From Macrostomum lignano (lineage: Eukaryota), in contig NIVC01000090.1 in the NCBI GenBank assembly GCA_002269645.1, positions 186,001-250,000 on the forward strand: 64,000 bases of DNA, read 5' to 3'. A program made the translations under genes and the position numbers. Positions 4,560 to 30,400 of this stretch are shown here, in pieces. The notes under the pieces are model-generated. The model was not told the DNA's origin. It searched no databases and saw nothing but the letters and a program-made list of their open reading frames with translations. How positions within the stretch are numbered: the stretch's first letter is position 1; each line of letters opens with the position of its first letter.

Positions 4560-5050
4560 TTTGCCTTCCTTTTCTTCTTCTTCTTCTTCCACATTTTTTT
4601 CGCCTCCCGGCGTAGGTGGCACCCTGTGTCTCGGACGTTTCCTCTTCTTCTGTTACTCGCCGCATGCTCTCTCATGCCGTGCCATGTTGGTTGCTGACAG
4701 CCATCTCTTACAGTATCGACATTCTGCTCTCTTCCTTTTGTGGATCCTTGCTATCATTCTCGCCGCTTTGTCGTTTGTCCTCGGTCCTTCTATTGCATGG
4801 GGCTCCTCTGCGCACTTCTTCCTGTGTCTTGCATAGTTAGTCTTACTGATCCATGTTTTACAGTTGTTACACTCTCTTCTTGTGCCTTCCGTCCTGCCTC
4901 TTGTGCACCATTTCTCGTGATTCTTTCTTGTTGCTTCCATTCTGAACTCGCTGTTGCATCTCTCGCATCTTATTCTTATGCCTGTATTGGTCTTGTGCAT
5001 TCTTTTGGCTAAACCTCCTCTTGATCTGCATACTTTTCCGCAGTTCTTTT
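4560..5050 (-). mobile_element. 5'-truncated non-LTR retrotransposon 3' end (RTE-like): C-terminal CCHC/C2H2 zinc fingers and a (GAA)n tail
   Basis: ORF 4653-5000 has three C-x2-C...H-x3-C fingers (CERC..H..WC, CNNC..H..KC, CRYC..H..AC). A broken upstream finger (KNCGKVCRSRGGLAK) follows an in-frame stop. The stop is followed by a short UTR and a (GAA)n tract at 4571-4590. Confidence 0.7.
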
Positions 5051-10070: not shown

Positions 10071-10763
10071 TACATGTTTTGCAATATATTCAGTATGGTA
10101 AGTCAATATGGTATAACAGTAATCAATTGCAATGCAGCAAAAACATTTTATCATTCTTTAACTATAATGCAGTGTTACTTTTTTTAAAGGCCTGCTTGCA
10201 TGACAGCTATTCGTGTAAGCTCAGAATTGCATGCATAGCATATAGTGTTCTACTGTGGCACCTCTATACTAAACCCCAGGCAAACTTTTGGTTTTGGTGA
10301 AATCAAGTTCTTGACCAAACTTTGGGGTTTCAAGCTAAGTATTTGAGTCAAGTTTTGTCAAGTAGTCAAGTAGAATAAAAATTTGGTAGTTAGTGAATTT
10401 CAAACCTCAACTTTGTTCTATTGTTTTATATTTCTGTACTAAACTTCTTAACTTTATATAGTTTCTTTTGTATTTCATATTTTTGCATTGAAACGATATT
10501 TTGTCATTTAACTTGATAGTACATGTCAAACAATGCTATATGCTACCAAAGAATTTTTAAAAGAACAAATACTTCTTTTGACACATCAATTACTTAAGGT
10601 ACAGTTTTATTTCCTTTCAAACCGGTTTATTATTAGCATTTTACTGGGTTTTATAGAAAAGAAATTTTTAATTATTTTTCAAGTCAAATTTAATTTTCAT
10701 AATATAAACTTTTTATCCAGCTACTACTGAAGACAGCATCTAACTAGTAGTCAGGTGGGCACG

Positions 10764-13700
10764 ATGGCAAAGTCTCTATCTGGCGCCAGTTCTGGCAGCC
10801 TGTTCTCATCGTGCACTCTTTACCTGGCTAATCTGCCAGCTCAGGCCACTGCAACAGACATTGCCAGGATGTTTGAACCCATAACTGGTCGCCTAGTTGA
10901 TTGCCAGCTTGGTCAAAGCGGCACTGGTTTGCTGGTCTGTCAGAGGCCTGATCTTGCTGAACGAGCTTACAATACCGAGTTGGCCGTGTTTGGTCGGCCT
11001 ATTATTATTAGATTGCAGCCAGCTCAGATTAGAACTAATCAATCTGCTTATAGTACTGTAAGTAGTAGCAATAGACATCGAAATAATCAGCATCAGAATC
11101 AGGCGCGGCGTCAGCAGCAGCAGCAAAGAAGTCGCCAGAGATGGTCGCAGAATCAACGATGTAGGAATGGTGAGACAAAAACAAACTTGAAATGTTTCAT
11201 GCAGTAAAAGCATTTCCCTGATATCAAGTATTCCTTTCTCGAGCCTTGGCATCTCAGCATCTCCTTTCTCAAGCCTTGACATCTCAGCATCTCCTTTCTC
11301 AAGCCTTGACATCCAGCATATCCTTTCTCAAGCCTTGACATCCAGCATATCCTTTCTCAAGCCTTGACATCTCAGCATCTCCTTTCTCAAGCCTTGACAT
11401 CTCAGCATCTCCTTTCTCAAGCCTTGACATCTCAGCATCTCCTTTCTCAAGCCTTGACATCTCAGAATCTCACTTTCAGCCTTAGCATAATGAAGATTAA
11501 TAAACCTTGAATATGGTGTAGAATCCCATAATTTTTCCAATGTTTCATTCAAATTGTCAGGTACAAGCGCAAAGTCTGATTCAAATACTACTACAACAGA
11601 CGAGAGTCGCCTCTGTAGCCAAGCAAACAGAGCATTAAATCTTAATCAGAAATCAACTAGCAACAGCTCCGATACAGTAGAATCTAGCCTGCGCTGTTCT
11701 AGGCAAGCCTTGGAACTGGCTATACGCGAGAGAAACACCGCTAAGCTAGAAGCCGTAGCTGCAAAATGGCCAGGCGGTACTGCTGCATTTGCCGAATTCT
11801 GTTCAGTGAATTCTGGTGCCGGATACAGAGGCACCGGGTTCTTGCCTCTGGTGCATGATTTAGTGTCCGAGGCTAGAAAGCCAAAGGAATTGCTGCTACA
11901 GCTGATTGAGTGCTGCAGAGTCGGACTGGACGAGAAGCAGGTGAGTTACCATGTATGCTAAATTGGTTCTTCACTGATGTACCTTACTGGGGTTAGTGTG
12001 ATTCACCGATGTAAATGTACGGGATTTGTGATTCACTGATGTACCTACGTGGGATTAGTGTAATTCACTGATGTACATGCATGGGATTAGTGTGATTCAC
12101 TGATGTACCTACGTGGAATTAGTGTGATTCACTGATGTACATGCATGGGATTAGTGTGATTCACTGATGTACCTACGTGGAATTAGTGTGATTCACTGAT
12201 GTACCTACATGGGATTAGTGTGATTCACTGATGTACCTACATGGGATTAGTGTGATTCACTAATGTACCTACATGGGATTAGTGTGATTCACTAATGTAC
12301 CTACATGGGATTAGTGTAATTCACTGATGTACATGCATGGGATTAGTGTGATTCACTGATGTACCTACATGGAATTAGTTTGATTCACTGATGTACCTAC
12401 AAGGAATTAGTTTGATTCACTGATGTACCTACAAGGAATTAGTTTGATTCACTGATGTACCTACAAGGAATTAGTTTGATTCACTGATGTACCTACAAGG
12501 AATTAGTGTGATTCACTGATGTACCTACAAGGAATTAGTTTGATTCACTGATGTACCTACAAGGAATTAGTTTGATTCACTGATGTATCTACAAGGAATT
12601 GGTATGATTCACTGATGTACCTACAAGGAATTAGTTTGATTCACTGATGTACCTACAAGGAATTGGTGTGATTCACTGATGTACCTACGTGGGATTAGTA
12701 TGATTCACTGATGTACCTACAAGGAATTAGTTTGATTCACTGATGTACCTACAAGGAATTAGTATGATTCACTGATGTACCTACAAGGAATTAGTTTGAT
12801 TCACTGATGTACCTACAAGGAATTAGTATGATTCACTGATGTACCTACAAGGAATTAGTTTGATTCACTGATGTACCTACAAGGAATTAGTTTGATTCAC
12901 TGATGTACCTACAAGGAATTAGTTTGATTCACTAGTTCATTAATTATTAATACTGTAAACTAACCAGGCCGCAGACACAGTGAATCGCTTAGTGAACAGT
13001 CGGGATCAGTACGGCTTCACGCCGCTTCACCGAGCCGTTCGCAGCGGTTCAGACGAGGCCGCCGAAATTCTATTGGCTAACGGAGCCGATGCCACCGCTG
13101 TGACTGACAGAGATCGTAGGACAGCATTGCACATTCACCTGTGGCTGGGTTGCGGCCCATTGGCTTATCGACTGTTAGACTCTGGCGCTGATCCTGACGC
13201 GTGTGATGCTGACAACTGGACACCGCTGCATTGGTGCGCTAAGAATGCTCACCTGGATTTTGCAAAGCATCTGATTTGCAAGCGGGGTGTAAGACTTTTT
13301 CGGTGAGTTGTGAGTCTTTTCATTTAGAATGTTACAGGCATGAAATTTAGGGTTTAGAAGTAAGTCTGAAGGTTTAGGTTTAAGGGGTCATTGAGGCTGA
13401 AAATTTAGGTTTACGGAGTCATTAACGCTAAAAAAATTTAAGTTTTTGGAGTCGTTGAAGCTGAAAATTTAGGTCTATGGGGTCATTGAGGCTTAAAATT
13501 TAGATTTATGGGGTCATTAAAGCTAAAAATTTTGGTTTATCGGGTCATTAAAGCAAAAAATTTAGGTTTATAGAGTCACTAAAGCTAAAAATTTAGGTTT
13601 ATTGGGTCATTAAAGCTGAAAATTTAGGTTTATGGGGTCATTAAAGCTGAAAATTTAGGTTTATTGGGTCATTAAAGCTGAAAATTTAGGTTTATGGGGT

Positions 13701-14664
13701 CATTAAAGCTGAAAATTTAGGTTTATTAATTGGGTCATTAAAGCTGAAAATTTAGGTTTATGGGGTCATTAAAGCTGAAAATTTAGGTTTATTGGGTCAT
13801 TAAAGCTGAAAATTTAGGTTTATGGGGTCATTAAAGCTGAAAATTTAGGTTTATTAATTGGGTCATTAAAGCTGAAAATTTAGGTTTATGGGGTCATTAT
13901 AGCTGAAAATTTAGGTTTATTGGGTCATTAAAGCTGAAAATTTTGGTTTATAGGGTCATTAAAGGTAGATAAATGTTTTCACAAATCATTGGAAGAACAT
14001 TTTAACACAATCGTTTAAAATCCTATGAAATTTAAGTTTTCAACCAGGTAATCCTTCGAAAAACATTTATAACATTTCAAGTTCCCAGGGCTGCACACTG
14101 AGCCCGCTGAAGCTTTGTCTGCAACAGATCAACCAGTGTGTGAACGGTCCGATGGCTCGAACTCAACAGCAGCAACAACCGCAGCAGCAGCAGCAGCAAA
14201 ATGTTCTCCAGTCTCTGTTCGCCATCGCCCGCCTGCTGCTCCGACACGGTGCCGTTCTGCCGGCGCAGTCGTTCCTAGCTGACTGGCTTGTGGCCACCAG
14301 CAACGACAATGTCGGTTGGTCGCCTCAAAATTCGACTGCTCAGCGCTATACTCAACTGGTTCACCTGCTAGCTGCTGAAGGTGCCGACTATGTTGTTCTT
14401 GAGGACGTTGACTCTGATGCCGTTGTCGAACCTGCCGACGATGTCGGCGTCAGAACGCCAAGATCGCTTGTCCAACTGTGCCGACTCAGCATTCGATCCC
14501 GGCTTCGACTTCTAAGCGGCGGTCGTAGCATTCTGAGTCGATTGAATCGGCTTCCGTTGCCACCCAGATTGTTGCGGCTTGTAGATTTGCCAGATCTGGC
14601 TGCTGGGGATGGCGGAGAAAATGGAGATTTCACCTGTGCTTTAGATGTGCAGTATCGGGAGTGA
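10764..14664 (+). CDS. RRM-like + ankyrin-repeat + C-terminal SOCS-box protein (ASB-like), 4 exons
   Basis: Exons 10764-11169 (phase 1), 11561-11940 (phase 0), 12968-13288 and 14089-14664. The third donor is uncertain: the stronger donor at 13303 is out of phase with the 14088 acceptor. RRM-like TLYLANLPAQAT; ankyrin motifs YGFTPLHRAV and DNWTPLHWCA; SOCS box PRSLVQLCRLSIRSRL...LPLPPRLLRLV. Confidence 0.8.
11236..11470. repeat. 30-bp intronic minisatellite (agccttgacatctcagcatctcctttctca)
   Basis: About 8 tandem copies; the 10-aa periodic ORFs on the minus strand match this period. Confidence 0.95.
11975..12930. repeat. 32-bp intronic minisatellite (ctgatgtacctacaaggaattagtttgattca)
   Basis: About 29 tandem copies filling intron 2 of gene 1. 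Confidence 0.95.
13360..13965. repeat. 31-32-bp intronic minisatellite (gggtcattaaagctgaaaatttaggtttat)
   Basis: Tandem array with degenerate 5' copies in intron 3 of gene 1. Confidence 0.95.
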
Positions 14665-14694: not shown

Positions 14695-15060
14695 AGTGAA
14701 AATCTAGAGTGACTTTAGGAGTGACATCTAGACATCTAGAGTCACTTTTATGTTTTAAGAGTGACATCTAGAGTGACTTTCAGGAATGACATCTAGAGTG
14801 ACTTTCTGTAGTGAAATCTAGAGTGACCTTCAGGAGTGACATCTAGAGTGACTTTCTGTAGTGAAATCTAAAGTGACTTTTAGGAGTGACATCTAGAGTG
14901 ATTTTCATGAGTGACATCTAGAGTGACTTTCTGTAGTGACATCTAGAGTGACTTTCTGTAGTGACATCTAGAGTGACCTTCAGGAGTGACATCTAGAGTG
15001 AATTTCTGTAGTGACATCTAGAGTGACTTTCAAGAGTGACTCATGAGTGACTCGAGTGAT
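14695..15060. repeat. 25-bp minisatellite (gtgacatctagagtgactttctgta) in the putative 3' UTR of gene 1
   Basis: Tandem copies begin about 30 nt after the stop; an AATAAA lies at 15329-15334. Confidence 0.9.
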
Positions 15061-15521
15061 TTACTAGTGTGACTTAGCAGTGCTTTTCGGCACTGAAGTG
15101 GGACTTACGAGTAACTTATATATGTCCTATACTCAATTTTATTGTTAAGTTATTAGTAATTGTGTCTAAAAACACAAGTTTATTTGTTATAGAAGAATTT
15201 TTATACATTTTTGCTTGTTTTTTTGCTTCTGTAAATATGTTAGCGCTTGGTCAAATTCAATAATCGCTATTAAAAGATGTACGTATAGATTTTTTGGTTT
15301 TGTTTTCAAATGTTTCAAATTAATTTACAATAAAACAATTAAATTGAAAATTTGTTTTAAAAAGAAGTCTTTATTTTACGCAATTTATTTCATAAGATAA
15401 TGTTATACTTTGAAAATTATTTTTGGGTTTGAAGCGAATATCCTAGCTGTACTACTTACAGTAAACCCCAAAAAATTTCAGCCGTATTGATTGCTCTACT
15501 TCTAACGAAAAACAACATAAA

Positions 15522-16474
15522 ATGTCGTCATCAACAACTATTAGTAAAGACAGTGCTGCAGCTGCTTGCAATAATAATTCTTCTTCTTTAACGTCTGGAA
15601 TTTCTGCTTCTATTGCCCCGGTGGTTTTTTCTGTTCCCGATTCTTGCGATGAAACGTCGTCGTCAATAATGACATCGGCACCAACAACAAATGAGCCGCC
15701 AACTGCCGTCCGACGTCAGACAAGTCTTGGCGATTATTTTCCAGCTGAGTTGGCTGTTCGGTCTTCTATTAGTTCACAGCAGCAGCAGCAGCAACATGGC
15801 AAACGTAGACAGCAGCAGCCGCCTCGTCACCGAGTTACTCGTCCAGCGTCGTCTGCTGCCGTCGCCGTAGCCAACGACGATAGCGGCTATGGCGATGTTG
15901 GCGATATTGAAGAGAGAAGGTTGCGGGATTGTTTAGCCTTAGCGTTCACTTCTTCGCCGCGCCAGCAGCAGCAGCAACAACAACAGCCGCATAGCGTAGC
16001 GTCAGCCTCAACATCCGTAGCGCCTCAACTGTTTAACGATCCTTTCGGCCTGGCTAAATTAGCAGATCAAGTTGATAAAGATGTCGGCGTTGTTAATGCT
16101 AACGACGGTCCGCTAAACCAGTCGTCATCGACAAATTCTTCGAGGTCGTCTTCGTCACCATCGACATCGGTGTCGATTGGCAGAACGTCGTTAAGCGACG
16201 AAGACGAACAACCGGTCGATGATGGCAATTCTCAGCGTCTTGGTGCCGATCTTGCAGCCGGAGCCGCTGTCTACAGTGTCGGCGGCGTCGCTTTGTCGAC
16301 GTTCGGTGTCGGTGAATCAACTGAAGATGACGATCGTCTGTTTCTTGCAGCCGGTGCCAATTCACTGTTTGAGTCTTCAATGTTTGTGAGTTGAGCAGGG
16401 AGAATGGCGGGTCTCTGGCTTCTTAGCGACTCTCGGTGTCCGTCTGTCCGTGTGTCTGTCTGTCTGTCTGTTTA

Positions 16475-16521
<47 letters not shown>

Positions 16522-19500
16522 GTGTGTCTGTCTGTGTCTGTATGTCTGTCTGTTTATCTGTGTCTGTCTGTCTGTCTGTCTGTCCCTCCCTGTCCGAGCA
16601 AAACCATTCAACAATCCTCATGCCGCATCATCCCAATTCGCCACTCTGCAGTCCGCCGCTGGCAGCCCGTCTGACCGACCGCTGCATCAACATCGCTTTG
16701 CCGACGGCGCCTTGCGTCGCAGAACCGGCGGCGGCAGCCACCAAGGCGGCAACGACGATCGCGAACTGTTTGTCGGCAATTTAGCCGCCGAAGTGACTAA
16801 CGAAGATTTAGTTCGAATATTTTCTGAATTCGGTCCGCTGAAGTCTGTCGGCATCGCCAAAGATTCCACTAGCGGAGCCTGCAAAGGCTTTGGGTTTCTC
16901 TGCTTTCAGCAGCCTGAATTGGCCGAAACTGTGCTAGAAAGTCCTCGACTGTTCACCCTCTACGGCCGGGTGCTCAGGGTTGACTGGCGGCTTAAGAATC
17001 CCGGTCACCATGGCAACCATGCTAATAGGCGATTATCTTCATCTTCGGGTTGCATTGGCTCGCCTAGGCATTATAATTATCAGCAGGTGCAGCTCGGCGC
17101 CAACCTGACCAATGCTGATGATGCTTCTGTACTGCCATCTGTTGATGATGATGAAGCCGCTAACGGAGGCTGCGGCCTAAACGGCGACTGTCAGCTGTTT
17201 GTCGGCAATTTAGCTTCGGATGTTACCCAAGGCGATCTGCGTCAATATTTTCGACGCTGGGGCGAACTGCTTTATTGCTACGTGATTCGCGATGAGGATG
17301 GCCAGTCCAAGAGATACGGATTCATTACGTTCAAGGTTTGGCTTTTCAGATTGAGGATTGGTTGTGTTTTAGGGTATTTTTTAAGGGATTCAATCTCATA
17401 GGATGAGATCTTCAACCTAATCTCAGGGGTAAGATTGTCCGCATGTCATCTCACGGGTGAGATTGTGAGCATGTCATCTCAGGGGTGAGATTGTGAGCAT
17501 TTCATCTCAGAGGTAAGATTGTGAGCATGTCATCTCACGGGTGAGATTGTCAGTATGTCATCTCAGGGGTAAGATTGTGAGCATGTCATCTCACAGGTGA
17601 GATTGTCAGAATGTCATCTCAGGGGTGAGATTTTCAGAATTTCATCTCAGGGGTGAGATTGCCAGCATGCAGAGTTAGTCAGTTAGTGAATTTATCAACA
17701 AAGATATCGTCCCCAATAAAATCCAGGACCCGAAAGTGGCCGAGCAGCTGATGCAGTCACGATCAAGTCACGTGCTCAAAGGCAAGCGTTTGCGCTTCGA
17801 AATGCCGAAACGCAGTCGCGAGGAAGCGTTCAGCCTCCGGCAGCAGGATGCTTCATCCTCGTCGGCGACTTCAACGCCGAAGACATCGCCGGGTGCTCCG
17901 ACAACTCCGGTTTCTACGAAGCTGTCTCAGCAGCAGGTTGTCTCGCCTGAGCAGAAGCAGTCGGTCCCAGCCGGTCTAGAGCAGAGCTCATCTGATCAGC
18001 TGCCATTGTGGCTGCATCTGCGTTTAATGTCTGACAAGGAGCAGCTGATCCTGTGCCTGCGCAAAGAGCTCGGCTTGTGCGGCCTATTGGCCGAGAGGCG
18101 AATGCGCGAGATTAGCCAGGCCAGGGACCAGGAGGCCCAGCTGATGCGGGTGTACGTGCAGCAATTGGAGGCTCAGGTCAAGGCTCAGACTGCCGAGCTG
18201 GAGACCCTGCGGCACCAGCTGGAGTGTCGGGGCGAACAGGTACTGTATCTGCTTGCTGTGTCTGCTTCTCACTGTGTCTGCTTCTCGCTGTGTCTGCTTC
18301 TCGCTGTGTCTGCTTCTCACTGTGTCTGCTTCTCACTGTGTCTGCTTCTCACTGTCTGCTTCTCACTGTGTCTGCTTCTCACTGTCTGCTTCTCACTGTG
18401 TCTGCTTCTCACTGTGTCTGCTTCTCGCTGTGTCTGCTTCTCACTGTGTCTGCTTCTCACTGTGTCTGCTTCTCACTGTGTCTGCTTCTCACTGTGTCTG
18501 CTTCTCGCTGTGTCTGCTTCTCGCTGTGTCTGCTTCTCACTGTGTCTGCTTCTCGCTGTGTCTGCTTCTCACTGTGTCTGCTTCTCACTGTGTCTGCTTC
18601 TCACTGTGTCTGCTTCTCACTGTGTCTGCTTCTCACTGTGTCTGCTTCTCACTGTGTCTGCTTCTCACTGTGTCTGCTTCTCGCTGTGTCTGCTTCTCAC
18701 TGTGTCTGCTTCTCGCTGTGTCTGCTTCTCACTGTGTCTGCTTCTTGCTGTGTCTGCTTCTCACTGTGTCTGCTTCTCACTGTGTCTGCTTCTCACTGTG
18801 TCTGCTTCTCGCTGTGTCTGCTTCTCACTGTGTCTGCTTCTCACTGTGTCTGCTTCTCACTGTGTCTGCTTCTCACTGTGTCTGCTTCTCACTGTGTCTG
18901 CTTCTCACTGTGTCTGCTTCTCGCTGTCTGCTTCTCACTGTGTCTGCTTCTCACTGTGTCTGCTTCTCACTGTCTGCTTCTCACTGTGTCTGCTTCTCAC
19001 TGTGTCTGCTTCTCGCTGTCTGCTTCTCACTGTGTCTGCTTCTCGCTGTCTGCTTCTCACTGTCTGCTTCTCACTGTGTCTGCTTCTCGCTGTCTGCTTC
19101 TCACTGTGTCTGCTTCTCGCTGTCTGCTTCTCACTGTCTGCTTCTCACTGTGTCTGCTTCTCACTGTGTCTGCTTCTCACTGTCTGCTCCTCACTGTACC
19201 TGCTTCTCGCTGTCTACTTCTCACTGTGTCTGCTTCTCACTGTCTGCTTCTCACTGTGTCTGCTTCTCGCTGTGTCTGCTTCTCGCCGTCTGCTTCTCAC
19301 TGTGTCTGCTTCTCGCTGTGTCTGCTTCTCGCTGTCTGCTTCTCACTGTGTCTGCTTCTCACTGTGTCTGCTTCTCACTGTGTCTGCTTCTCGCTGTCTG
19401 CTTCTCACTGTGTCTGCTTCTCACTGTGTCTGCTTCTCGCTGTCTGCTTCTCACTGTGTCTGCTTCTCGCTGTCTGCTTCTCACTGTCTGCTTCTCACTG

Positions 19501-19878
19501 TGTCTGCTTCTCACTGTGTCTGCTTCTCACTGTCTGCTCCTCACTGTACCTGCTTCTCGCTGTCTACTTCTCACGGTGTCTACTTCTGACAATTCCAATG
19601 CTCAATTGCCACTCACTCTGCAGGTGAAACTTCTGACGGCCAAAACTGAGGCTCTGGCTGTGGAAATTGTCAAGGCCTGGGGCTGCGCAGCTGCCACAGC
19701 CGCTGCCAGCACCAATGGACGGGGCAAAGAGGATTGCGGCGCCTCCGCTGCCGCCGGGCCCGGCGCTGTTGCCGTTTCTGCTTCGCAGCAGCAGCAGAAG
19801 CAGCCGCAGCAGCAGCAGCAACCACCAATGTTTCACCATCAGCACAGACTTCGTCCAGACTCCGGCATCGGACTTTGA
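15522..19878 (+). CDS. RNA-binding protein with two RRM domains, a low-complexity N-terminus and a C-terminal coiled coil (about 771 aa, 4 exons)
   Basis: Exons 15522-16385, 16652-17335, 17727-18239 and 19624-19878, all junctions phase 0. RNP2/RNP1 motifs LFVGNL...KGFGFLCF and LFVGNL...KRYGFITF. Heptad-like segment REISQARDQEAQLMRVYVQQLEAQVKAQTAELETLRHQLE. Confidence 0.85.
16440..16585. repeat. (TGTC)n microsatellite in intron 1 of gene 2
   Basis: Direct inspection. Confidence 0.95.
17400..17670. repeat. 28-bp intronic minisatellite (gagattgtgagcatgtcatctcaggggt)
   Basis: About 9 copies in intron 2 of gene 2. Confidence 0.9.
18245..19590. repeat. 16/14-bp intronic minisatellite (tgtgtctgcttctcac)
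   Basis: Fills intron 3 of gene 2 and produces the spurious CVCFSLCLLLTVSASH ORFs. Confidence 0.95.
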
Positions 19879-21468
19879 AGCTGAATGTAAGACAATTAAT
19901 TGCAAGACAAAATTAATAAACTGTTTTTTTGGAAGGCTCGTCTGCTTTAAATTTTTTTTCGACAAGCAACGCGACTAATTTCTTTTTTTCCATACAATTT
20001 TTCGTCTTGTTTTCGCTTTCTCATTATTAATCCCCAGGATTTTCGGTCATTGTTTTGCGTTTTTTCAGTGAGTTAAGCAGGTTTTAGAAGTTTATCATTT
20101 TTTCATTTCTTTCCGTCTTTCTATACAACATTTATATAGTTTTTTTTCTTTAGCTAGATAAGTTTGACTTGAACATGACATACTGATATTAACTGTAGTT
20201 CGTTCATCCATCATTTACAGTTGAACACACGAGTCCATATTTTCAAGTTTTGTTTATTTTTGTTTATTTGTGAAGCAATTTTGCATTTTCACGCCCGCCT
20301 CACCCAAGCCTCGGTGTTGGTCACTCCCGCTTCGCTTAGTTTCTATGAAGCGCTTTTTCGCCATCCGTTTAAACAAAAACCATCTTCCGGTGTTGGGTAT
20401 ATTTCGTAACTCTTTACTTTAAACTGGTTGCATTTATATGCTTTATGAATGAAACACTTTGATTTATATTGAATTGAGCAGTTGTGCATTTATATGATAG
20501 CTTTATGCTCTGACTTCTTAATCGCATTAATTCATTTATTATTTTTATATAGTAGGAATTAGACCCAAAAACCAGCTGCCAAACCAATTAACGTTTTTCT
20601 CTGTTTTGCCAATTAATTATCTATCATATTTCAGTTTTTTCCATTTTTCTTTATCCTGATTGTTCGCGCGTGTCCATGTTTCCGTCTGTTCACTTAGCAA
20701 CATAATTCAACATCTCTTTGATTTTTGATTGATTGAACAGTTTGGCCAAGTTTTGAAGAAAAAAAACCAACTGTTGGCATGAATAAACATTGCTAAAAGG
20801 GACTGACAAACGACTCTGTGCGTTTATTGACAGAGAAATTTGGTGCATGGAGATTGCAATTTGTTTTTCTTGTTGAGGCATTTTTCAAGAGTTTTCCATT
20901 CAGGACAAAATTGAGATTTCTTTTATCATTTTTTTCATTTATTTCTTATCGAGATGGCATCCCCTACTAAAGAGTAGCAAAGTGAGTAATTTGATGTCAA
21001 AATTTAATGAAAAGCTCACGAAACGAAAAGCTCTTTTTTCTTAGGCTAATAACAATTTGCAAGGTGGAAACCTACATGCGAGGGATTTTTGGCGCGCGTC
21101 GAAGGTTCTAGCAGACCTTTTTATTTTTACTGCTTACCCACATTGTACTTCAATCTGTTGTGCATTTGTACATCTTAAACTGATATTTGCATACTTAGCC
21201 TTGGCCAATGAGAGCTCTTCGTATGATTCAGCAAAAAACGGCGCTTGCCCTGTCCGTTTTCCCTCTCTTACCCTATCTCATCGCTGATTGGCTAGAACTA
21301 GCGAGACATCGTCCACCCCATCGCCTACCCCAAATTGCTGTCTGAATTTAATTATAATTCTTATAATTACCTTATCACACTGGTTGGAGCGATAATTAAA
21401 AGGTCGGCAGTATTTATTGATTGAGCAGTGCGATTGTGCAACACAATACCGGTACATCAAAAGGACAA

Positions 21469-24400
21469 ATGATGAAGATTAGACAGTTAATTCTGCTATT
21501 AACTGTACTAGCTGCGTGTCTTAATTGTAGCGAAGCTTATCGCCACAAAAGACGCAAAGAGTGCAACAACAAGACGCCGATATGTCGGTCCGACCGTTTC
21601 GACGTTGTATTTAGTCACTACGACGATTGGGACTGCAAGGTGTTCAAGTGCAAGTGCCGAGATCCCGTTGCTAAGACCTGTCCGCAGGGTCAGGCCCGGC
21701 TGCAGGTGAGGCCCGATTGTTGGGAGCTGATCGATACAGATAGAGCGGAATTAGAGAGAAGATGCAGAAGGGGAATAAAGGAAGATACAGAAGGAGAATT
21801 AGGGAAGATACAGAGTGGGAATCAGAGAAGATTACACGGGGGAAATTAGGAAGGATCCACAAGGTAATTAAAGAAGATACCCAGAAGGGATTAGGGAAGA
21901 TACGCGGGGAAACTAGGGAAAATAGAGTGCATGAATTAACTAAGATACACCAGGGAAATTAGGGAAGATACAAAAGGGGGATTAGAGAAGATAGACAAGG
22001 GGAATTAGGGAAGATACACAGGGGGGAATTAGGGAAGATACAAAGGGGGATTAGAGAAGATAGACAAGGGGAATTAGGGAAGATACACAGGGGGAATTAG
22101 GGAAGATACAAAGGGGGGTTAGAGAAGATAGACAAGGGGAATTAGGGAAGATACACAGGGGGAATTAGGGAAGATACAAAGGGGGGATTAGAGAAGATAG
22201 ACAAGGGGAATTAGGGAAGATACACAGGGGGAATTAGGGAAGATACAAAGGGGGATTAGAGAAGATAGACAAGGGGAATTAGGGAAGATACACAGGGGGA
22301 ATTAGGGAAGATACAAAGGGGGGTTAGAGAAGATAGACAAGGGGAATTAGGGAAGATACACAGGGGGAATTAGGGAAGATACAAAGGGGGATTAGAGAAG
22401 ATAGACAAGGGGAATTAGGGAAGATACACAGGGGGAATTAGGGAAGATACAAAAGGGAGGTTAGAGAAGATAGACAAGGGGAATTAGGGAAGATACACAG
22501 GGGGAATTAGGGAAGATACAAAGGGGGGATTAGAGAAGATAGACAAGGGGAATTAGGGAAGATACAAAGGGGGGATTCGAGAAGATAGACAAGGGGAATT
22601 AGGAAAGATACACAGGGGGAATTAGGGAAGATACAAAGGGGGGATTAGAGAAGATAGACAAGGGGAATTAGGGAAGATACAAAGGGGGGATTCGAGAAGA
22701 TAGACAAGGGGAATTAGGAAAGATACACAGGGGTAATTAGGGAATATACACAGATGGAGTTATGGAAAATAAACGCACAGAGATGTTAAATCAATTCGTC
22801 ATTCGCTCAGGTGGACTCTGACGGCTGCCAGTACTACGAGTGCCAGTCCTGCCCACCAAGGCCAGTCTGCCAAGGCACCCAGCAGGTGACTTTCCGTGGT
22901 AACGACGCCAACAACTGCCCAGTGTACACCTGCGACTGTCCGCTAAATCCAAATCGGCCCCAATGCGGACCGAATCAACAGCTTCAGCAGACTACTGACA
23001 GTAGCGGATGCCCGAGCTTCTTTTGTCAGCAGACTCGAACCCAGTGCCCGGATGCGCCCAGCTGCAGCTCCAACCAGCAGTTGGTCAGCGTTGGGGTCAA
23101 TGGAGACTGTCAGATCTACAAGTGCGAATGCTTGACCCCAGCCAAGATTGCTTGCAACGTGGGATCTCAGGCCCGACTGCAAGATGACGGACTTGGCTGT
23201 CAGGTGAGCGAAGCTTGATCGTGTAGTTTAATAAGGGTAAAGTGTAACTTGAGTAGGTTACAGTGAAGTTGAGTAGGTTAGAGTGAGGTTGAGTAGGTTA
23301 GAGTAAATTTGAGTTGGTTAGAGGGAAGTTGAGTAGGTTAGAGTAAATTTGAGTTGGTTAGAGGGAAGTTGAGTAGGTTAGAGTAAATTTGAGTTGGTTA
23401 GAGGGAAGTTGAGTAGGTTAGAGTAAATTTGAGTTGGTTAGAGGGAAGTTGAGTAGGTTAGAGGGAAGTTGAGTAGGTTAGAGTAAATTTGAGTTGGTTA
23501 GAGTGAGGTTGAGTAGGTTAGAGTAAATTTGAGTTGGTTAGAGTGAGGTTGAGTAGGTTAGAGTAAATTTGAGTTGGTTAGAGGGAAGTTGAGTAGGTTA
23601 GAGTGAAATTGAGTTGGTTAGAGGGAAGTTGAGTAGGTTAGAGTAAATTTGAGTTGGTTAGAGTGAGGTTGAGTAGGTTAGAGTAAATTTGAGTTGGTTA
23701 GAGTGAGGTTGAGTAGGTTAGAGTAAATTTGAGTTGGTTAGAGTGAGGTTGAGTAGGTTAGAGTGAAATTGAGTTGGTTAGAGGGAAGTTGAGTAGGTTA
23801 GAGTGAAATTGAGTTGGTTAGAGGGAAGTTGAGTAGGTTAGAGTAAATTTGAGTTGGTTAGAGGGAAGTTGAGTAGGTTAGAGGGAAGTTGAGTAGGTTA
23901 GAGTAAATTTGAGTTGGTTAGAGTGAGGTTGAGTAGGTTAGAGTAAATTTGAGTTGGTTAGAGTGAGGTTGAGTAGGTTAGAGTAAATTTGAGTTGGTTA
24001 GAGGGAAGTTGAGTAGGTTAGAGTGAAATTGAGTTGGTTAGAGGGAAGTTGAGTAGGTTAGAGTGAAATTGAGTTGGTTAGAGGGAAGTTGAGTAGGTTA
24101 GAGTGAAATTGAGTTGGTTAGAGTGAGGTTGAGTAGGTTAGAGTAAATTTGAGTTGGTTAGAGTGAGGTTGAGTAGGTTAGAGTAAATTTGAGTTGGTTA
24201 GAGGGAAGTTGAGTAGGTTAGAGTGAAATTGAGTAGGTTAGAGTAAATTTGAGTTGGTTAGAGGGAAGTTGAGTAGGTTAGAGTGAAATTGAGTTGGTTA
24301 GAGGGAAGTTGAGTAGGTTAGAGTAAATTTGAGTAGGTTAGAGGGAAGTTGAGTAGGTTAGAGTGAAATTGAGTTGGTTAGAGGGAAGTTGAGTAGGTTA

Positions 24401-27400
24401 GAGTAAATTTGAGTTGGTTAGAGTGAGGTTGAGTAGGTTAGAGTAAATTTGAGTTGGTTAGAGTGAGGTTGAGTAGGTTAGAGTAAATTTGAGTTGGTTA
24501 GAGTGAGGTTGAGTAGGTTAGAGTGAAATTGAGTTGGTTAGAGGGAAGTTGAGTAGGTTAGAGTGAAATTGAGTTGGTTAGAGTGAGGTTGAGTAGGTTA
24601 GAGTAAATTTGAGTAGGTTAGAGGGAAGTTGAGTAGGTTAGAGTGAAATTGAGTTGGTTAGAGTAAATTTGAGTTGGTTAGAGTGAGGTTGAGTAGGTTA
24701 GAGTAAATTTGAGTTGGTTAGAGGGAAGTTGAGTAGGTTAGAGTGAAATTGAGTAGGTTAGAGTAAATTTGAGTTGGTTAGAGGGAAGTTGAGTAGGTTA
24801 GAGTAAATTTGAGTTGGTTAGAGGGAAGTTGAGTAGGTTAGAGTAAATTTGAGTTGGTTAGAGGGAAGTTGAGTAGGTTAGAGTGAAATTGAGTTGGTTA
24901 GAGGGAAGTTGAGTAGGTTAGAGTAAATTTGAGTTGGTTAGAGTGAGGTTGAGTAGGTTAGAGTAAATTTGAGTTGGTTAGAGTGAGGTTGAGTAGGTTA
25001 GAGTAAATTTGAGTTGGTTAGAGTGAGGTTGAGTAGGTTAGAGTGAATTTGAGTTGGTTAGAGGGAAGTTGAGTAGGTTAGAGTGAAATTGAGTAGGTTA
25101 GAGTGAGGTTGAGTAGGTTAGAGTGAGGTTGAGTAGGTTAGAGTGAAGTTGAGTAGGGTCAGAATAAAGAATTGAGTAGCTTAGAGTAATGCTGAGTAGG
25201 TCAGAGTAAAGTTAAGTACGTCAGAGTGAGCTTAAGTAGGTTAGAGTAAAGTTGAGTTGGTTAGAGTGAGGTTGAGTAGGTTAGAGTGAATTTGAGTTGG
25301 TTAGAGTAAAGTTGAGTAGGTTAGAGTAAAGTTGAGTTGGTTAGAGGGAAGTTGAGTAGGTTAGAATGAAGTTCAGTAGGTCAGAGTGAAGTTGAGTAGG
25401 GTCAGAGTGAAGTTGAGTAGGGAAGGTGTTAAAATGAATCTAAGGGTAGAGCAGAATGGAGAACCGATAGAGTGGACTGAAGTCGCCTGTTCCCGCCCAC
25501 CCCTCTCCCCAGGTGTACAAGTGCGTGGAGAACCGCTCCCCCTGTCCCCCTGAGCCGGCCTGCCCGTCGCCGCACCAGATGGTGTCGCAGAACGGCGTGG
25601 ATGGCAACAACTGCATCAAGTACGTGTGCAAGTGCATCCCGCTGGCTCCCATCACCTGTCCGGCTGGGTTCCGCCAAATCATGGACACTGACGAGACCTG
25701 CGCCTGCCAGTACTACAAGTGCGAGCCGAACTGCGAGCAGAAGCCCAACTGCCCCTCTGTGAGTCACTGGCTTCAGCACATCTGACTCACTTTGATTCAC
25801 ATTGAATCAGTTTGATTCACATTGACTCACTTTGATTCACATTGAATCAGTTTGATTCACATTGACTCACTTTGACTCAGTTTGATTCACATTGACTCAC
25901 TTTGACTCACTTTGACTCACTTTGATTCACATTGACTCACTGTATTCACTATGAATCAGTTTGATTCACATTGACTCACTTTGACTCAGTTTGATTCACA
26001 TTGACTCACTTTGACTCAGTTTGATTCACATTGACTCACTTTGACTCACTTTGACTCACTTTGATTCACATTGACTCACTGTATTCACTATGAATCAGTT
26101 TGATTCACATTGACTCACTTTATTCACATTGAATCAGTTTGATTCACATTGACTCACTTTATTCACATTGAATCAGTTTGATTCACATTGACTCACTTTG
26201 ACTCAGTTTGATTCACATTGACTCACTTTGACTCACTTTGACTCACTTTGAACTTTGACTCACTTTGACTCCCTTTGACTCACATAGACTCACTTTGACT
26301 CCCTTTGACTCACTTTGACTCACTTTGACTCACTTTGAACTTTGACTCACTTTGACTCCCTTTGACTCACTTTGACTCACTTTGACTCAGTTGACTCACT
26401 GACTTACTTTGAATGACTTTGATTCACATTCACTCCCTTTGACTCACTTTGACACACCCACCTTGCCTTACTCCGACTCACCAGGTACACCAGGAGCCCG
26501 TGATCTCTGGCACCCGCAACAATGGCTGTCCAACCTACTCGTGTCAGTGCAAAAATCCGGAAGTGATCAGCTGCACCCTGGCAGATTCGCACCTGGTGCT
26601 GAGCAAAGCCACCGACGGCTCCAACTGCGATGTGTACGTCTGCCAGAATGACAACAGCGGCACGCGCAGTTGCGGGGCCGTCCCGAACTGCCCGGCTGGT
26701 CAACCGCCAGTGCTGAGTAGTTATGATGCTCAGGTGAGCAGTTTCTTGGAAACTGGAATCTAGGATCTAGGATCTGGGATCTAGGATCTGGGATCTAGGA
26801 TCTGGTATCTCTAGGATCTGGGATCTCTAGGATCTGGGATCTCTAGGATCTGGGATCTCTAGGATCTGGGATCTCTAGGATCTGGGATCTCTAGGATCTG
26901 GGATCTCTAGGATCTGGGATCTCTAGGATCTGGTATCTCTAGGATCTGGTATCTCTAGGATCTGGGATCTCTAGGATCTGTGATCTCTAGGATCTGGGAT
27001 CTCTAGGATCTGGGATCTCTAGGATCTGGGATCTCTAGGATCTGGGATCTCTAGGATCTGGGATCTCTAGGATCTGGGATCTCTAGGATCTGGGATCTCT
27101 AGGATCTGGGATCTCTAGGATCTGGTATCTCTAGGATCTGGTATCTCTAGGATCTGGGATCTCTAGGATCTGTGATCTCTAGGATCTGGGATCTCTAGGA
27201 TCTGTGATCTCTAGGATCTGGGATCTCTAGGATCTGGGATCTCTAGGATCTGGGATCTCTAGGATCTGGGATCTCTAGGATCTGGGATCTCTAGGATCTG
27301 GGATCTCTAGGATCTGGGATCTCTAGGATCTGGGATCTCTAGGATCTGGGATCTCTAGGATCTGGGATCTCTAGGATCTGGGATCTCTAGGATCTGGGAT

Positions 27401-30400
27401 CTCTAGGATCTGGGATCTCTAGGATCTGGGATCTCTAGGATCTGGGATCTCTAGGATCTGGGATCTCTAGGATCTGGGATCTCTAGGATCTGGGATCTCT
27501 AGGATCTGGGATCTCTAGGATCTGGGATCTCTAGGATCTGGGATCTCTAGGATCTGGGATCTCTAGGATCTGGGATCTCTAGGATCTGGGATCTCTAGGA
27601 TCTGGGATCTCTAGGATCTGGGATCTCTAGGATCTGGGATCTAGGATCTGCAGCCCGCCGCAAACTAAGTAAAAGATATGAATATGTACTTTTATTTATT
27701 AACTTCTCCGGAACCCCGCCGGCAGGGCTGCCCAGTCTACTTGTGCAGCGGCGGTTCCGGAACGAACTGCCCAGCCGCGCCACCCTGCGGAGCCGGCGAA
27801 ACCCAGCAGATTGTCGGCCGCGACACGCTGGGCTGCCCGCAGTACGTCTGCAACCGGATCGGGTGCACCACGCCGCCCAACTGCGGCAACCAGCAGGCCG
27901 TGTTCAGTCAGTACCAGAACAACTGCCCAGTGTACGTGTGCCAGGACAGCAGGTCCTGTCCCACCGTGCCCGCCTGTCCGCAATTGCAGGTGTCCTTCCA
28001 GGTGAGGCAAGACCCTCCATAGCAGTCCATAGACTCTCCATCCATATTCCATTTGCTATCGTCCATCTCGTATCAGCTATCTCTCATTTCATATCTGTCA
28101 TTTCCAATCTTCTATCTCCTATCTCATCTCCTATCTCATCTCCTATCTCATCTCCTATCTCATCTCCTATCTCATCTCCTATCTCATCTCCTATCTCATC
28201 TCCTATCTCATCTCCTATCTCGCATCTTCTATCTCCCATCTCCTATCTCCCATCTCCTATCTCGCATCTTCTATCTCCCATCTCCTATCTCCCATCTCCT
28301 ATCTCCCATCTCCTATCTCCCATCTCCTATCTCCCGTCTCCTATCTCCCGTCTCCTATCTCCCATCTCCTATCTCCCATCTCCTATCTCCCATCTCCTAT
28401 TTCCGATCTCCTATCTCCCATCTCCTATCTCCCATCTCCTATCTCATATCTCATATCTCCTATCTCCCATCTCCTATCTCCCATCTCCTATCTCATATCT
28501 CCTATCTCCCATCTGCTATCTCCCATCTCCTATCTCCGATCTCCTATCTCTCATCTCCCATCTCCCATCACCTATCTCTCATCTCCTATCTCCCATATGC
28601 TATCTCCAATCTCCTATCTTTCATCTCCTATCTCCCATCTCCTATCTCCCATCTCCTATCTCCTATCTCCTATCTCCCATCTCTCATCTTCTAGCTGCTA
28701 TCTCGCATCTCATGTATCAAATTTCCCATATCTCTTTTTCATTTTCATTTCTATTGAGATACAATGCTTCCTAGACTAGAAGGCAAGTCAAAGTTAAGCA
28801 GATTTAGGCGGTTAGTACGCAGCTAAGAAGGTATGCATGCAGTCATTATGAACGGCAAATGCATTGCAGTCCTATGGCACTGTACATGTAGAAGCCATAT
28901 ACAGCAACTACAGCGGCTGTATGGCAGTTTTGTTTTAGAAAACAAGAATGCACCCTCGACACACATCTGCATCCTCCATCCCCAGGTCGGCTACATCAGC
29001 GGCCCAGGCAGCTGTCCGCAGTACGTCTGCCAGCCAAACTTCTGCCCGGCACCGGCAATCTGCCCAGCCAATCAGAGCCCGAATTACGTCACTGTCAGTA
29101 ACGGTTGCGTGTCAGTGACGTGCGGCAACACGCGCAGCTGCCAAGGCGTGCCCACCTGCCGTTCAGGCGAAACTCCTCAGGTGACTGGCACAGATTCTCG
29201 CGGCTGCACCCGCTACGTCTGCTACCGAATGGGCTGTCCGAATCCGCCCACTTGTCCAGTTAATCAGCTGGTCACCGTGACTGGATACGATGCGTCCAAT
29301 TGTGCGGTTAGTGACACTGCCGTCTCTGTCTGCAGACATTGTGCAGCTTAAAGTCTGGTTTACATGAAGGTCATTTGGGTGTGTCTGCAGACATTGTGTA
29401 GCTTGAATTCTGCCTAAGGTCAAATCTTGGGTTGCGTTCGGGCGTTAAGTATATTTAGCCTCATTGACGTATTTCTACGTTTCTGAATATTTAAATGATT
29501 TCTTGGCGATCTGCCCGTTGAGAACGTTACCGTGACATGAATCACCATACAGTCATTCCAAACAATTCACTGGTGACTCTCTCTTGTGACGTTCTAACAT
29601 GATTGCATGTAATATGACAGAGAGGCGACTGTTGAGTCACCGAGAGCGTCACGTGAGTTGCAGAATCGTAATAAGAGTCGCGAAAAAGCCGTCAAAGAAT
29701 TGTTGTGCTAGCGGTTAACATCCTACTAACTTAAGTAGACTGAATAGAGTTGTTATAAATGCGAACTGTGATTCTGATTCATAAAGTGACGCTACGTATT
29801 GTGGTTTTCGAACATATCGGATACATTTCCATACTTCCATCCATTTAATAAAACTACTCATCGAACCACTCTCGTGAACCCGCACTCCCGCAGGTGTACA
29901 CCTGTCAAAACGACAACGGCTGCCAGGATCCGATTACCTGTCTGGCCTCGGAGACTCAGCTGTACATCGGCCAGGATTCCAACGGCTGTCCGGAGTATCT
30001 TTGCCATCCGACCGGATGCACTCCGCCTCCAAGCTGCACTATCGGAGAGCGTCTAGTAACTACCGGAGTCAACGGTAATTGTCCGATTTACCGCTGTCAA
30101 TCCAGCACCAGAAGTTGTCCGGTTCGGCCAAACTGTCCGGGCGGACAGACGCCCAACGTCGTTGCCTACGATAGCAGCAGCTGTCCAGTGTACAGCTGTC
30201 CGAACAATGGCGGCACATTCTGCACCCAACAGGTGCCCAACTGTCCGAACGGTCAGACACCGATTTCGTCTGGAACAGACGCCAACGGCTGTCCGGTGTA
30301 CGTCTGTCAGTTCACCAGCCGCTCGTGTCCGTTTCCGCCTGTCTGCTCGGACGGTCGAGCTGTGGCTGTAATCGGTCGGGACACCAACAACTGTCCAATC

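Follow-up and report, generated by a model that had tools for sequence, protein, structure and literature searches.

Can a substrate receptor of a cullin-RING ubiquitin ligase carry an RNA-recognition motif (RRM) of its own? The question is raised by a locus in a stretch of 64,000 nucleotides from Macrostomum lignano (assembly GCA_002269645.1, contig NIVC01000090.1, positions 186,001 to 250,000 of the forward strand; hereafter the window, whose coordinates are used throughout). A first-pass annotation had read there an RRM-like domain fused to an ankyrin and SOCS-box protein of the ASB type, and had proposed, as a candidate for a new system, an RNA-guided or ribonucleoprotein (RNP)-targeting Cullin-5 (Cul5) adaptor. 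We found that window positions 10740-14664 (+) are one four-exon protein-coding gene of M. lignano, BOX15_Mlig032031g1. Its product is best explained as an ASB-like substrate receptor of the Cul5-RING ubiquitin ligase (CRL5), with a lineage-specific, divergent RRM-fold head that would serve as a second recruitment module, a reading to which we give a probability of roughly 0.55. Instead of a new system, the gene presents an unusual, lineage-restricted new domain combination within the known family of ASB-type Cul5 adaptors.

The locus of PAA91307.1 (NIVC01000090.1:186740-210664 of assembly GCA_002269645.1, Mlig_3_7) agreed with the window at 23,925 of 23,925 compared bases, the window coordinate being the coordinate within that locus plus 739, which identifies the window as nuclear DNA of this flatworm. 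Four open segments on the + strand (10764-11169, 11561-11940, 12968-13302, and 14082-14664) join in frame through GT-AG introns, and the spliced 567-aa translation is identical to PAA91307.1 ("hypothetical protein BOX15_Mlig032031g1, partial") minus 8 N-terminal residues that derive from the 5' untranslated region. The gene is no new find, as GenBank already holds its product as a hypothetical protein; the identifiers Mlig032031 and Mlig013927 (the latter belonging to a second genomic copy, described below) were not mentioned in the paper texts or the M. lignano paper supplements searched. A protein search with the spliced model returned M. lignano proteins of 83-92% identity. From the N-terminus, the 567 residues comprise a folded domain (about aa 17-85), a Q/N/R/S-rich linker, an ankyrin region, and a C-terminal SOCS box.

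The annotated 5' end and 5' untranslated region occupy 10740-10763; GenBank gives a "5'-partial" coding sequence from 10740, with a TGA in the same frame at 10728-10730. We took the ATG at 10764 as the true start of the open reading frame (ORF) and rejected the GTG at 10755, which is merely where the ORF listing began. The coding part of exon 1 (10764-11169; aa 1-135 plus 1 nt, phase 1) encodes TLYLANLPAQATATDIARMF...GTGLLVC...VFGRPIIIRL followed by a Q/N/R-rich tail, as the first-pass annotation had described, and ends at the donor gtgaga at 11170. Exon 2 (11561-11940; aa 136-262) contributes an S/T/N-rich linker and the beginning of the ankyrin region, exon 3 (12968-13302; aa 263-373 plus 2 nt) three canonical ankyrin repeats, and exon 4 (14082-14664) degenerate ankyrin-like helices interrupted by poly-Q, followed by an acidic linker and the SOCS box, with a TGA as stop codon at 14662-14664. 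The exon 1/2, 2/3, and 3/4 junctions are in phases 1, 0, and 2, with strong donors (GTGAGA, GTGAGT, and GTGAGT) and the acceptors ...ttgtcag, ...aaccag, and ...ttcaag. The G+C content is 49-56% in exons and 31-41% in introns. Each intron is dominated by a different minisatellite of 30-32 bp: intron 1 (11170-11560, 391 bp, acceptor AG at 11559-11560) consists mostly of 8 copies of a 30-bp unit (11232-11477), intron 2 (11941-12967, 1027 bp) contains 30 copies of a 32-bp unit (11970-12933), and intron 3 as given by GenBank (13303-14081, GTGAGT...AG) contains 19 copies of a 31-bp unit (13366-13964). For intron 3 an in-frame pair at 13289/14088 was also tried; it removes VRLFRSQ and gives an abnormal spacing of the ankyrin repeats. 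The 13303/14081 junction was adopted because it matches PAA91307.1 exactly and restores normal ankyrin spacing.

Whether the four exons belong to one transcript is the first point on which the fusion depends. The Mlig_3_7 annotation was built from StringTie/TACO RNA-seq assemblies and a de novo transcriptome, not ab initio; experimentally mapped sites of trans-splicing and polyadenylation determined where its units were cut (TBONE), and the ORFs came from TransDecoder (PMC5730564). This pipeline gave one mRNA with all four exons and made no cut between exons 1 and 2. The single in-phase ORF and this RNA-seq-derived single mRNA bear out the earlier proposal that exons 1-4 are spliced in phase in one transcript. 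An older, independent annotation (UniProt A0A1I8GKR9 and A0A1I8GPJ2) likewise joins exon 1 to exon 2. Both older models are mis-spliced: the donor that they use lies inside exon 1, after AVFG, and the N-terminal domain would lose its last strand. No ATG in exon 2 or exon 3 is in frame, and the next Met codon downstream comes only in exon 4, past the ankyrin repeats. The spliced leader of M. lignano ends in ATG (PMC8629364). Read from the sequence, such an ATG on the exon 2 acceptor is out of frame and meets a TAA at the 26th codon after it; on exon 3 it is in frame, which may provide a route to a head-less isoform. The spliced-leader sequence was not found in the window. An exact look-up in a 15-billion-protein collection gave no match to a stand-alone exon 1 protein, either unspliced or spliced to the frameshift stop of the second copy.

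The C-terminal part of the protein was examined with Pfam. Ankyrin matches cover aa 268-367 (12983-13282) with E-values of 7e-18 for Ank_2, 3.1e-15 for Ank, and 3e-15 for Ank_4. Three canonical repeats accompanied by degenerate ones precede the SOCS box; alignments to designed ankyrin repeat proteins (DARPins) and ankyrin structures in the PDB stretch the repeat region to about aa 234-374, and an additional degenerate repeat in exon 4 gave a weak DARPin match (E 0.0056). Pfam reported no more ankyrin repeats in exon 2 or in the first half of exon 4. The SOCS box (PF07525; 14455-14571) scored 29.3 bits (gathering cut-off 23.5; E 1e-6) at aa 499-537 of the 567-aa protein, which corresponds to aa 492-530 of a 560-aa model in which the match was also numbered. 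Its BC box, SLVQLCRLSI (14464-14493), follows the consensus [STP]-L-x3-[CSA]-x3-[LIVM], and its Cul5 box, LPLPPRLLRLV, has the core LPLP at 14551-14562; both are intact in the translation. The sequence LP-phi-P is the determinant of Cul5 binding (PMC4812663). Because the ankyrin repeats and the SOCS box pass the Pfam thresholds and the BC and Cul5 boxes are present, the C-terminal 340 residues are predicted to form an ordinary ASB-type adaptor, which upholds the earlier reading of ankyrin repeats followed by a terminal SOCS box. A phmmer search of the SOCS segment against the PDB returned only chance matches to eL18. The exon 4 protein, a query that contains poly-Q, had zero matches in a 5.8-billion-protein set at E<=10; this result is no sign of absence because the known paralogue of about 93% identity went undetected as well.

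The N-terminal RRM-like domain (aa 17-85, 10812-11018) was analyzed by sequence and by predicted structure. In a phmmer search of aa 1-97 against the PDB, 13 of 19 weak matches were RRMs. The best (E 0.0047, over aa 19-89) was ASD-1, which we take to be the C. elegans homologue of RBFOX; the others included hnRNP H', NONO, ZCRB1, RBM4B, and nucleolin. Against 1.84 billion representative proteins, phmmer gave five matches. Apart from the self-match, these were two repeat proteins, which are spurious, and two proteins with several RRMs each (E 4.8e-6 and 3.3e-5), in which Pfam finds six and at least three RRM_1 matches, respectively. When the window was scanned in all six frames, exon 1 matched nothing other than itself except an exon of the neighbouring gene that encodes an RRM (E 1.5e-5). 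AlphaFold2 (AF2), run on aa 1-102 as a single sequence, predicted the order beta1-alpha1-beta2-beta3-alpha2-beta4'-beta4 (strands at 17-22, 47-49, 56-59, 73-75, and 78-84; helices at 30-41 and 62-69), with a predicted local distance difference test (pLDDT) score of 70-80 in the core. With this model as the query, all 50 of the top 50 Foldseek matches in the PDB were RRMs, at probabilities of 0.92-1.0, among them the p65 xRRM, AUF1, hnRNP L, PTBP1 RRM1, U1A, Fox-1, and NONO; target-normalised TM-scores were 0.45-0.64 for most single-domain RRM chains. Confidence in the fold is moderate because the model was built from a single sequence. The first-pass annotation had read an RRM-like fold in the N-terminus; the fold (AF2 and Foldseek) and the weak matches, most of which are RRMs, agree with it, but Pfam gives no RRM match.

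An alignment with nine RRMs spans beta1 to beta4, places RNP2 and the G-R-P-I-x-I motif in register, and keeps the hydrophobic core well. RNP2 is canonical: LYLANL (aa 19-24, 10818-10835), with Tyr20, fits [ILV]-[FY]-[ILV]-x-N-L. The RNP1 equivalent is SGTGLLVC (aa 52-59, 10917-10940) against [KR]-G-[FY]-[GA]-[FY]-[ILV]-x-[FY], with the basic residue and all three aromatic positions replaced (T54, L56, C59), and the beta2-beta3 loop is about 6 residues shorter than in the nine aligned RRMs. Two of four sequence-level RRM features, the fold and RNP2, are thus present, and two, a profile match and RNP1, are absent. Taken together, these results indicate, with moderate confidence, that the N-terminal domain is a genuine but divergent RRM-fold domain. 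RNA binding by it is possible, is far from implied, and seems doubtful because the beta3 residues that normally stack on RNA bases are lost. Some non-canonical or pseudo-RRMs with degenerate RNP motifs bind proteins, as UHM-type domains do. The M. lignano domain resembles them in combining an RRM fold with replaced RNP1 aromatic residues; unlike UHM-type domains, it shows no R-x-F motif or acidic helix alpha-1 by inspection.

We then compared the gene with a collinear second locus on NIVC01000684.1 (L001), of 92-99% identity, in which exon 1 is intact (window 10764-14664 against L001 8575-12320). Exon 2 of this paralogue carries a TC insertion (L001 10065-10066, between window positions 11829 and 11830). 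The insertion shifts the frame, and the ORF begun in exon 1 ends after 236 aa, which uncouples the RRM-like part from the ankyrin-SOCS part. The GenBank model of the paralogue, PAA78518.1 (Mlig013927g2), is a 363-aa ankyrin-SOCS protein without the RRM-like head that begins at an ATG otherwise out of frame (window 11766). The older model of the paralogue, A0A1I8GPJ2, skips the insertion site through a 23-nt pseudo-intron, which suggests that the insertion was present in the older assembly too. A further older entry, A0A1I8FJA9 ("RRM domain-containing"), was rejected as evidence for the RRM link, being a chimeric model of SOCS-box fragments and the neighbouring RRM gene; the locus pair thereby shows three UniProt models of the older annotation to be mis-spliced or chimeric. 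Minisatellite arrays occur at the paralogous locus also, apparently in different copy numbers.

Substitutions between the two copies were counted by a Nei-Gojobori-style method. Exon 3 has 7 synonymous and 1 nonsynonymous changes, exon 4 has 4 and 8, exon 2 has none of either kind, and exon 1 has 0 and 4. By these counts, purifying selection clearly acts on the ankyrin exon (exon 3); in exon 1 the changes are too few, and the two copies give no evidence either way on selection. Divergence between the copies is very uneven, with 0 synonymous changes in about 185 sites of exons 1-2, which are 99-100% identical, and 7 in 81 sites of exon 3 (pS 0.086). Gene conversion of the 5' half may be one cause. 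The relatives of aa 1-262 found in the 5.8-billion set were M. lignano models only.

ASB proteins are substrate receptors of Elongin B/C-Cullin-5-Rbx2 ligases, with ASB1-18 in mammals (PMC4812663); ASB9 is an example (PMC3779351). Judged by its sequence, the M. lignano protein has the defining features of the family, namely ankyrin repeats that precede a SOCS box at the C-terminus, the box being some 40 aa long and containing a BC box (S-L-x3-C-x3-I) and the Cul5 box LPLP. It differs from ASB proteins in its N-terminal RRM-fold domain and long low-complexity linker, and in that just three canonical repeats were detected. A review of Cul5 ligases lists SOCS-box classes with SH2, WD40, SPRY, Ank, LRR, and GTPase domains and none with an RRM (PMC4812663). 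A full-text search on the three domain names found no paper describing an RRM-ankyrin-SOCS architecture, "not described" being a weaker statement than "absent"; to this extent the earlier remark that no ASB protein with an RRM is known stands. RNA-binding ubiquitin ligases (RBULs; for example MEX3, MKRN, and RING-type members with RRMs) are defined as carrying a catalytic RING, HECT, or RBR domain themselves (PMC5707401). Like them, the M. lignano protein combines an RNA-binding-type domain, whose RNA binding is putative here, with a ubiquitin-ligase function in one polypeptide. By the published definition it does not count as an RBUL, as Pfam detects neither a RING nor a HECT nor an RBR domain in it; it would be a cullin-RING substrate receptor.

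What has been shown is how the gene is built, which domains it encodes, and, with moderate confidence, that the head has an RRM fold; the assembly of an E3 ligase and any role of the RRM-like domain are inferred. By homology, the SOCS box, through its BC box and LPLP Cul5 box, would dock Elongin B/C and Cullin-5/Rbx2, and the ankyrin-repeat domain presumably holds the substrate, and the protein would thereby serve a CRL5 (ECS) ubiquitin ligase as its substrate receptor. The RRM-fold head, on a disordered, flexible Q/N/R/S-rich tether of about 90 aa, would have been added by a 5' exon specific to the lineage, and would most likely be a second recruitment module. Since RNP1 is degenerate, the head more probably binds a protein or RNP partner, or RNA weakly and without sequence specificity, than reads an RNA sequence.

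Several results weigh against this reading and bear on how far it can be trusted. No RRM family from Pfam matched aa 1-135 or the full protein at E<=10, the Foldseek E-values are just 2e-3 to 4e-2, the mean pLDDT of the AF2 model of aa 1-102 is 61.5 from single-sequence input, and RNP1 is degenerate. A single-sequence AF2 model of the full-length protein reached a pLDDT of 42 and is unusable. Neither the C-terminal half nor the SOCS segment matched an ASB chain in the PDB, which gives no specific ASB orthology. Exhaustive phmmer found no orthologue of the N-terminal domain among the 1.84 billion representative proteins; the paralogue is frameshifted in exon 2; all four substitutions in exon 1 are nonsynonymous; and the single-transcript claim rests on a deposited, RNA-seq-derived annotation. 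The likeness of the N-terminal domain to RRMs might be due to chance and not to homology: besides the missing Pfam match, the sequence E-values are all weak (0.0047 at best in the PDB), and two of the five deep-search matches are spurious repeat proteins. We regard this as very remote, given that four independent searches (phmmer against the PDB, Foldseek, deep phmmer, and the six-frame scan) point to RRMs only and that beta1 to beta4 align with RNP2 and G-R-P-I-x-I in register. The fusion, for its part, might be an annotation artefact: exon 1 could be a small gene in its own right, or an upstream cistron, that is co-transcribed with the downstream exons and was merged with them. About 7% of assembled M. 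lignano transcripts are polycistronic precursors (PMC5730564), the ankyrin-SOCS gene and the downstream RRM gene at the paralogous locus carry one transcriptional-unit prefix (Mlig013927 g2/g3), and an unspliced exon 1 would stop at 11205-11207 to give a 147-aa ORF. An in-phase GT-AG intron nevertheless connects exons 1 and 2, exons 2-3 have no in-frame ATG, nor would the spliced-leader ATG be in frame if joined to exon 2, TBONE made no cut there, no separate exon 1 protein is on record, and two independent annotations join the exons, all of which makes an artefact highly improbable.

The remaining alternatives accept the gene as it stands and concern the head. It may be without any selected function, the work being left to the ankyrin/SOCS part and the gene being a young, effectively neutral chimera in which an ASB-type gene captured a decaying-RRM exon in the Macrostomum lineage and is now losing it. 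The lack of a head-domain orthologue elsewhere (in the 5.8-billion set and the 1.84 billion representatives), the loss of the key RNP1 residues, and the 0 synonymous and 4 nonsynonymous changes in exon 1 against 7 and 1 in the ankyrin exon would fit such a history, as would the TC insertion, which already cuts the head off the ankyrin-SOCS part in the paralogue and leaves it annotated as a 363-aa protein. Four substitutions, however, are too few for a test of selection, and exons 1-2 are so nearly identical between the copies (99-100%, with gene conversion possible) that they hold little signal; moreover, the hydrophobic core and RNP2 are well kept, the domain folds in silico, and the ankyrin part of the window copy has no start codon of its own. 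We consider a neutral chimera a substantial alternative, with odds well below even. The RNA-guided or RNP-targeting adaptor of the first-pass annotation, in which the RRM would bind RNA and bring the ligase to RNP-bound substrates or make its activity RNA-dependent, can draw on the RRM fold, the canonical RNP2 with Tyr20, and the R/Q/N-rich tail that follows the domain, and RNA-binding E3 ligases exist as a class (PMC5707401). It is nonetheless unlikely: RNP1 lacks the Lys/Arg and the base-stacking aromatic residues, the loop between beta2 and beta3 is short, and the domain gets no RRM score from Pfam and is not conserved outside the species. Its most far-reaching form, a first cullin-RING substrate receptor with an RRM of its own, in which RNA would mediate or gate how an ASB-type Cul5 adaptor reaches substrates or RNP granules, appears less likely still. 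The reading of an ASB-like CRL5 receptor with a second recruitment module remains the one that we prefer.

The second RRM gene alongside, to which the first-pass annotation had attached weight, is real. It lies at 15522-19878 (+) and corresponds to PAA91308.1 (Mlig005226g1, 771 aa), which has RRM_1 matches on record; we reconstructed its exons as 15522-16385, 16652-17335, 17727-18239, and 19624-19878, with two RRM-like segments in the second exon. Exon 1 was considered as a recent copy of this gene's RRM, and the idea was rejected: the score of exon 1 against the neighbour, 20.4 bits, is equalled by its score against unrelated RRMs of the PDB. Since exon 1 resembles the neighbour's RRMs no more than it resembles RRMs in general (20 bits each), adjacency adds little and is no evidence of a shared origin. 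At the paralogous locus, the ankyrin-SOCS gene Mlig013927g2 and the neighbour's paralogue Mlig013927g3 have a common transcriptional-unit prefix, and in the window an acceptor-like TTTCAG (15475-15480) lies 41 bp upstream of the neighbour's ATG; the reported trans-splice motif is [T/C]TNCAG (PMC8629364). The shared prefix and the TTTCAG site make co-transcription of the two genes plausible.

Other features of the window are mostly repeats. A 25-bp array (14759-15052) lies just past the stop codon of the gene, and a 16-bp unit is repeated 86 times at 18256-19587, within the last intron of the neighbour. Further arrays occupy 21747-22771 (23/69-bp unit), 23234-25418 (40-bp unit, 54 copies), 26766-27650 (16-bp unit, 56 copies), and 57299-60047 (14-bp unit, 193 copies, composed solely of C and T on the + strand). 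The five arrays from 18256 onwards are very large, and they explain why the composition profile shows extreme GC and AT skews. On either side of the 23-bp array, the ORFs at 21421-21849 and 22811-23218 (+) encode cysteine-rich, secreted-looking sequences (e.g. ...CPVYTCDCPLNPNRPQCGPNQQ...), and they may be exons of a repetitive Cys-rich protein. A 115-aa ORF at 4653-5000 (-) has a repeated C-x2-C...H-x3-C-like spacing (CERCNSEF...HEKWC, CNNCKTW...HRKKC, CRYCKRW...HERAC); it resembles a zinc-finger array and is possibly derived from a mobile element.

What the gene means for the biology of M. lignano and of the ASB family depends on the head. A functional RRM-like head would connect an adaptor of Cul5 ligases directly with RNA or RNP partners, outside the SOCS-box classes described so far, and a true RRM-bearing Cul5 adaptor would carry the idea of RNA-binding E3 ligases beyond RING ligases to the adaptors of CRL5. 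Should the head lack a function, the locus pair would still be a clear case of fusion by recent exon capture, with one duplicate intact and the other frameshifted, in a genome that was itself duplicated recently. M. lignano is amenable to RNAi and transgenesis, and the gene is hence testable in the organism itself.

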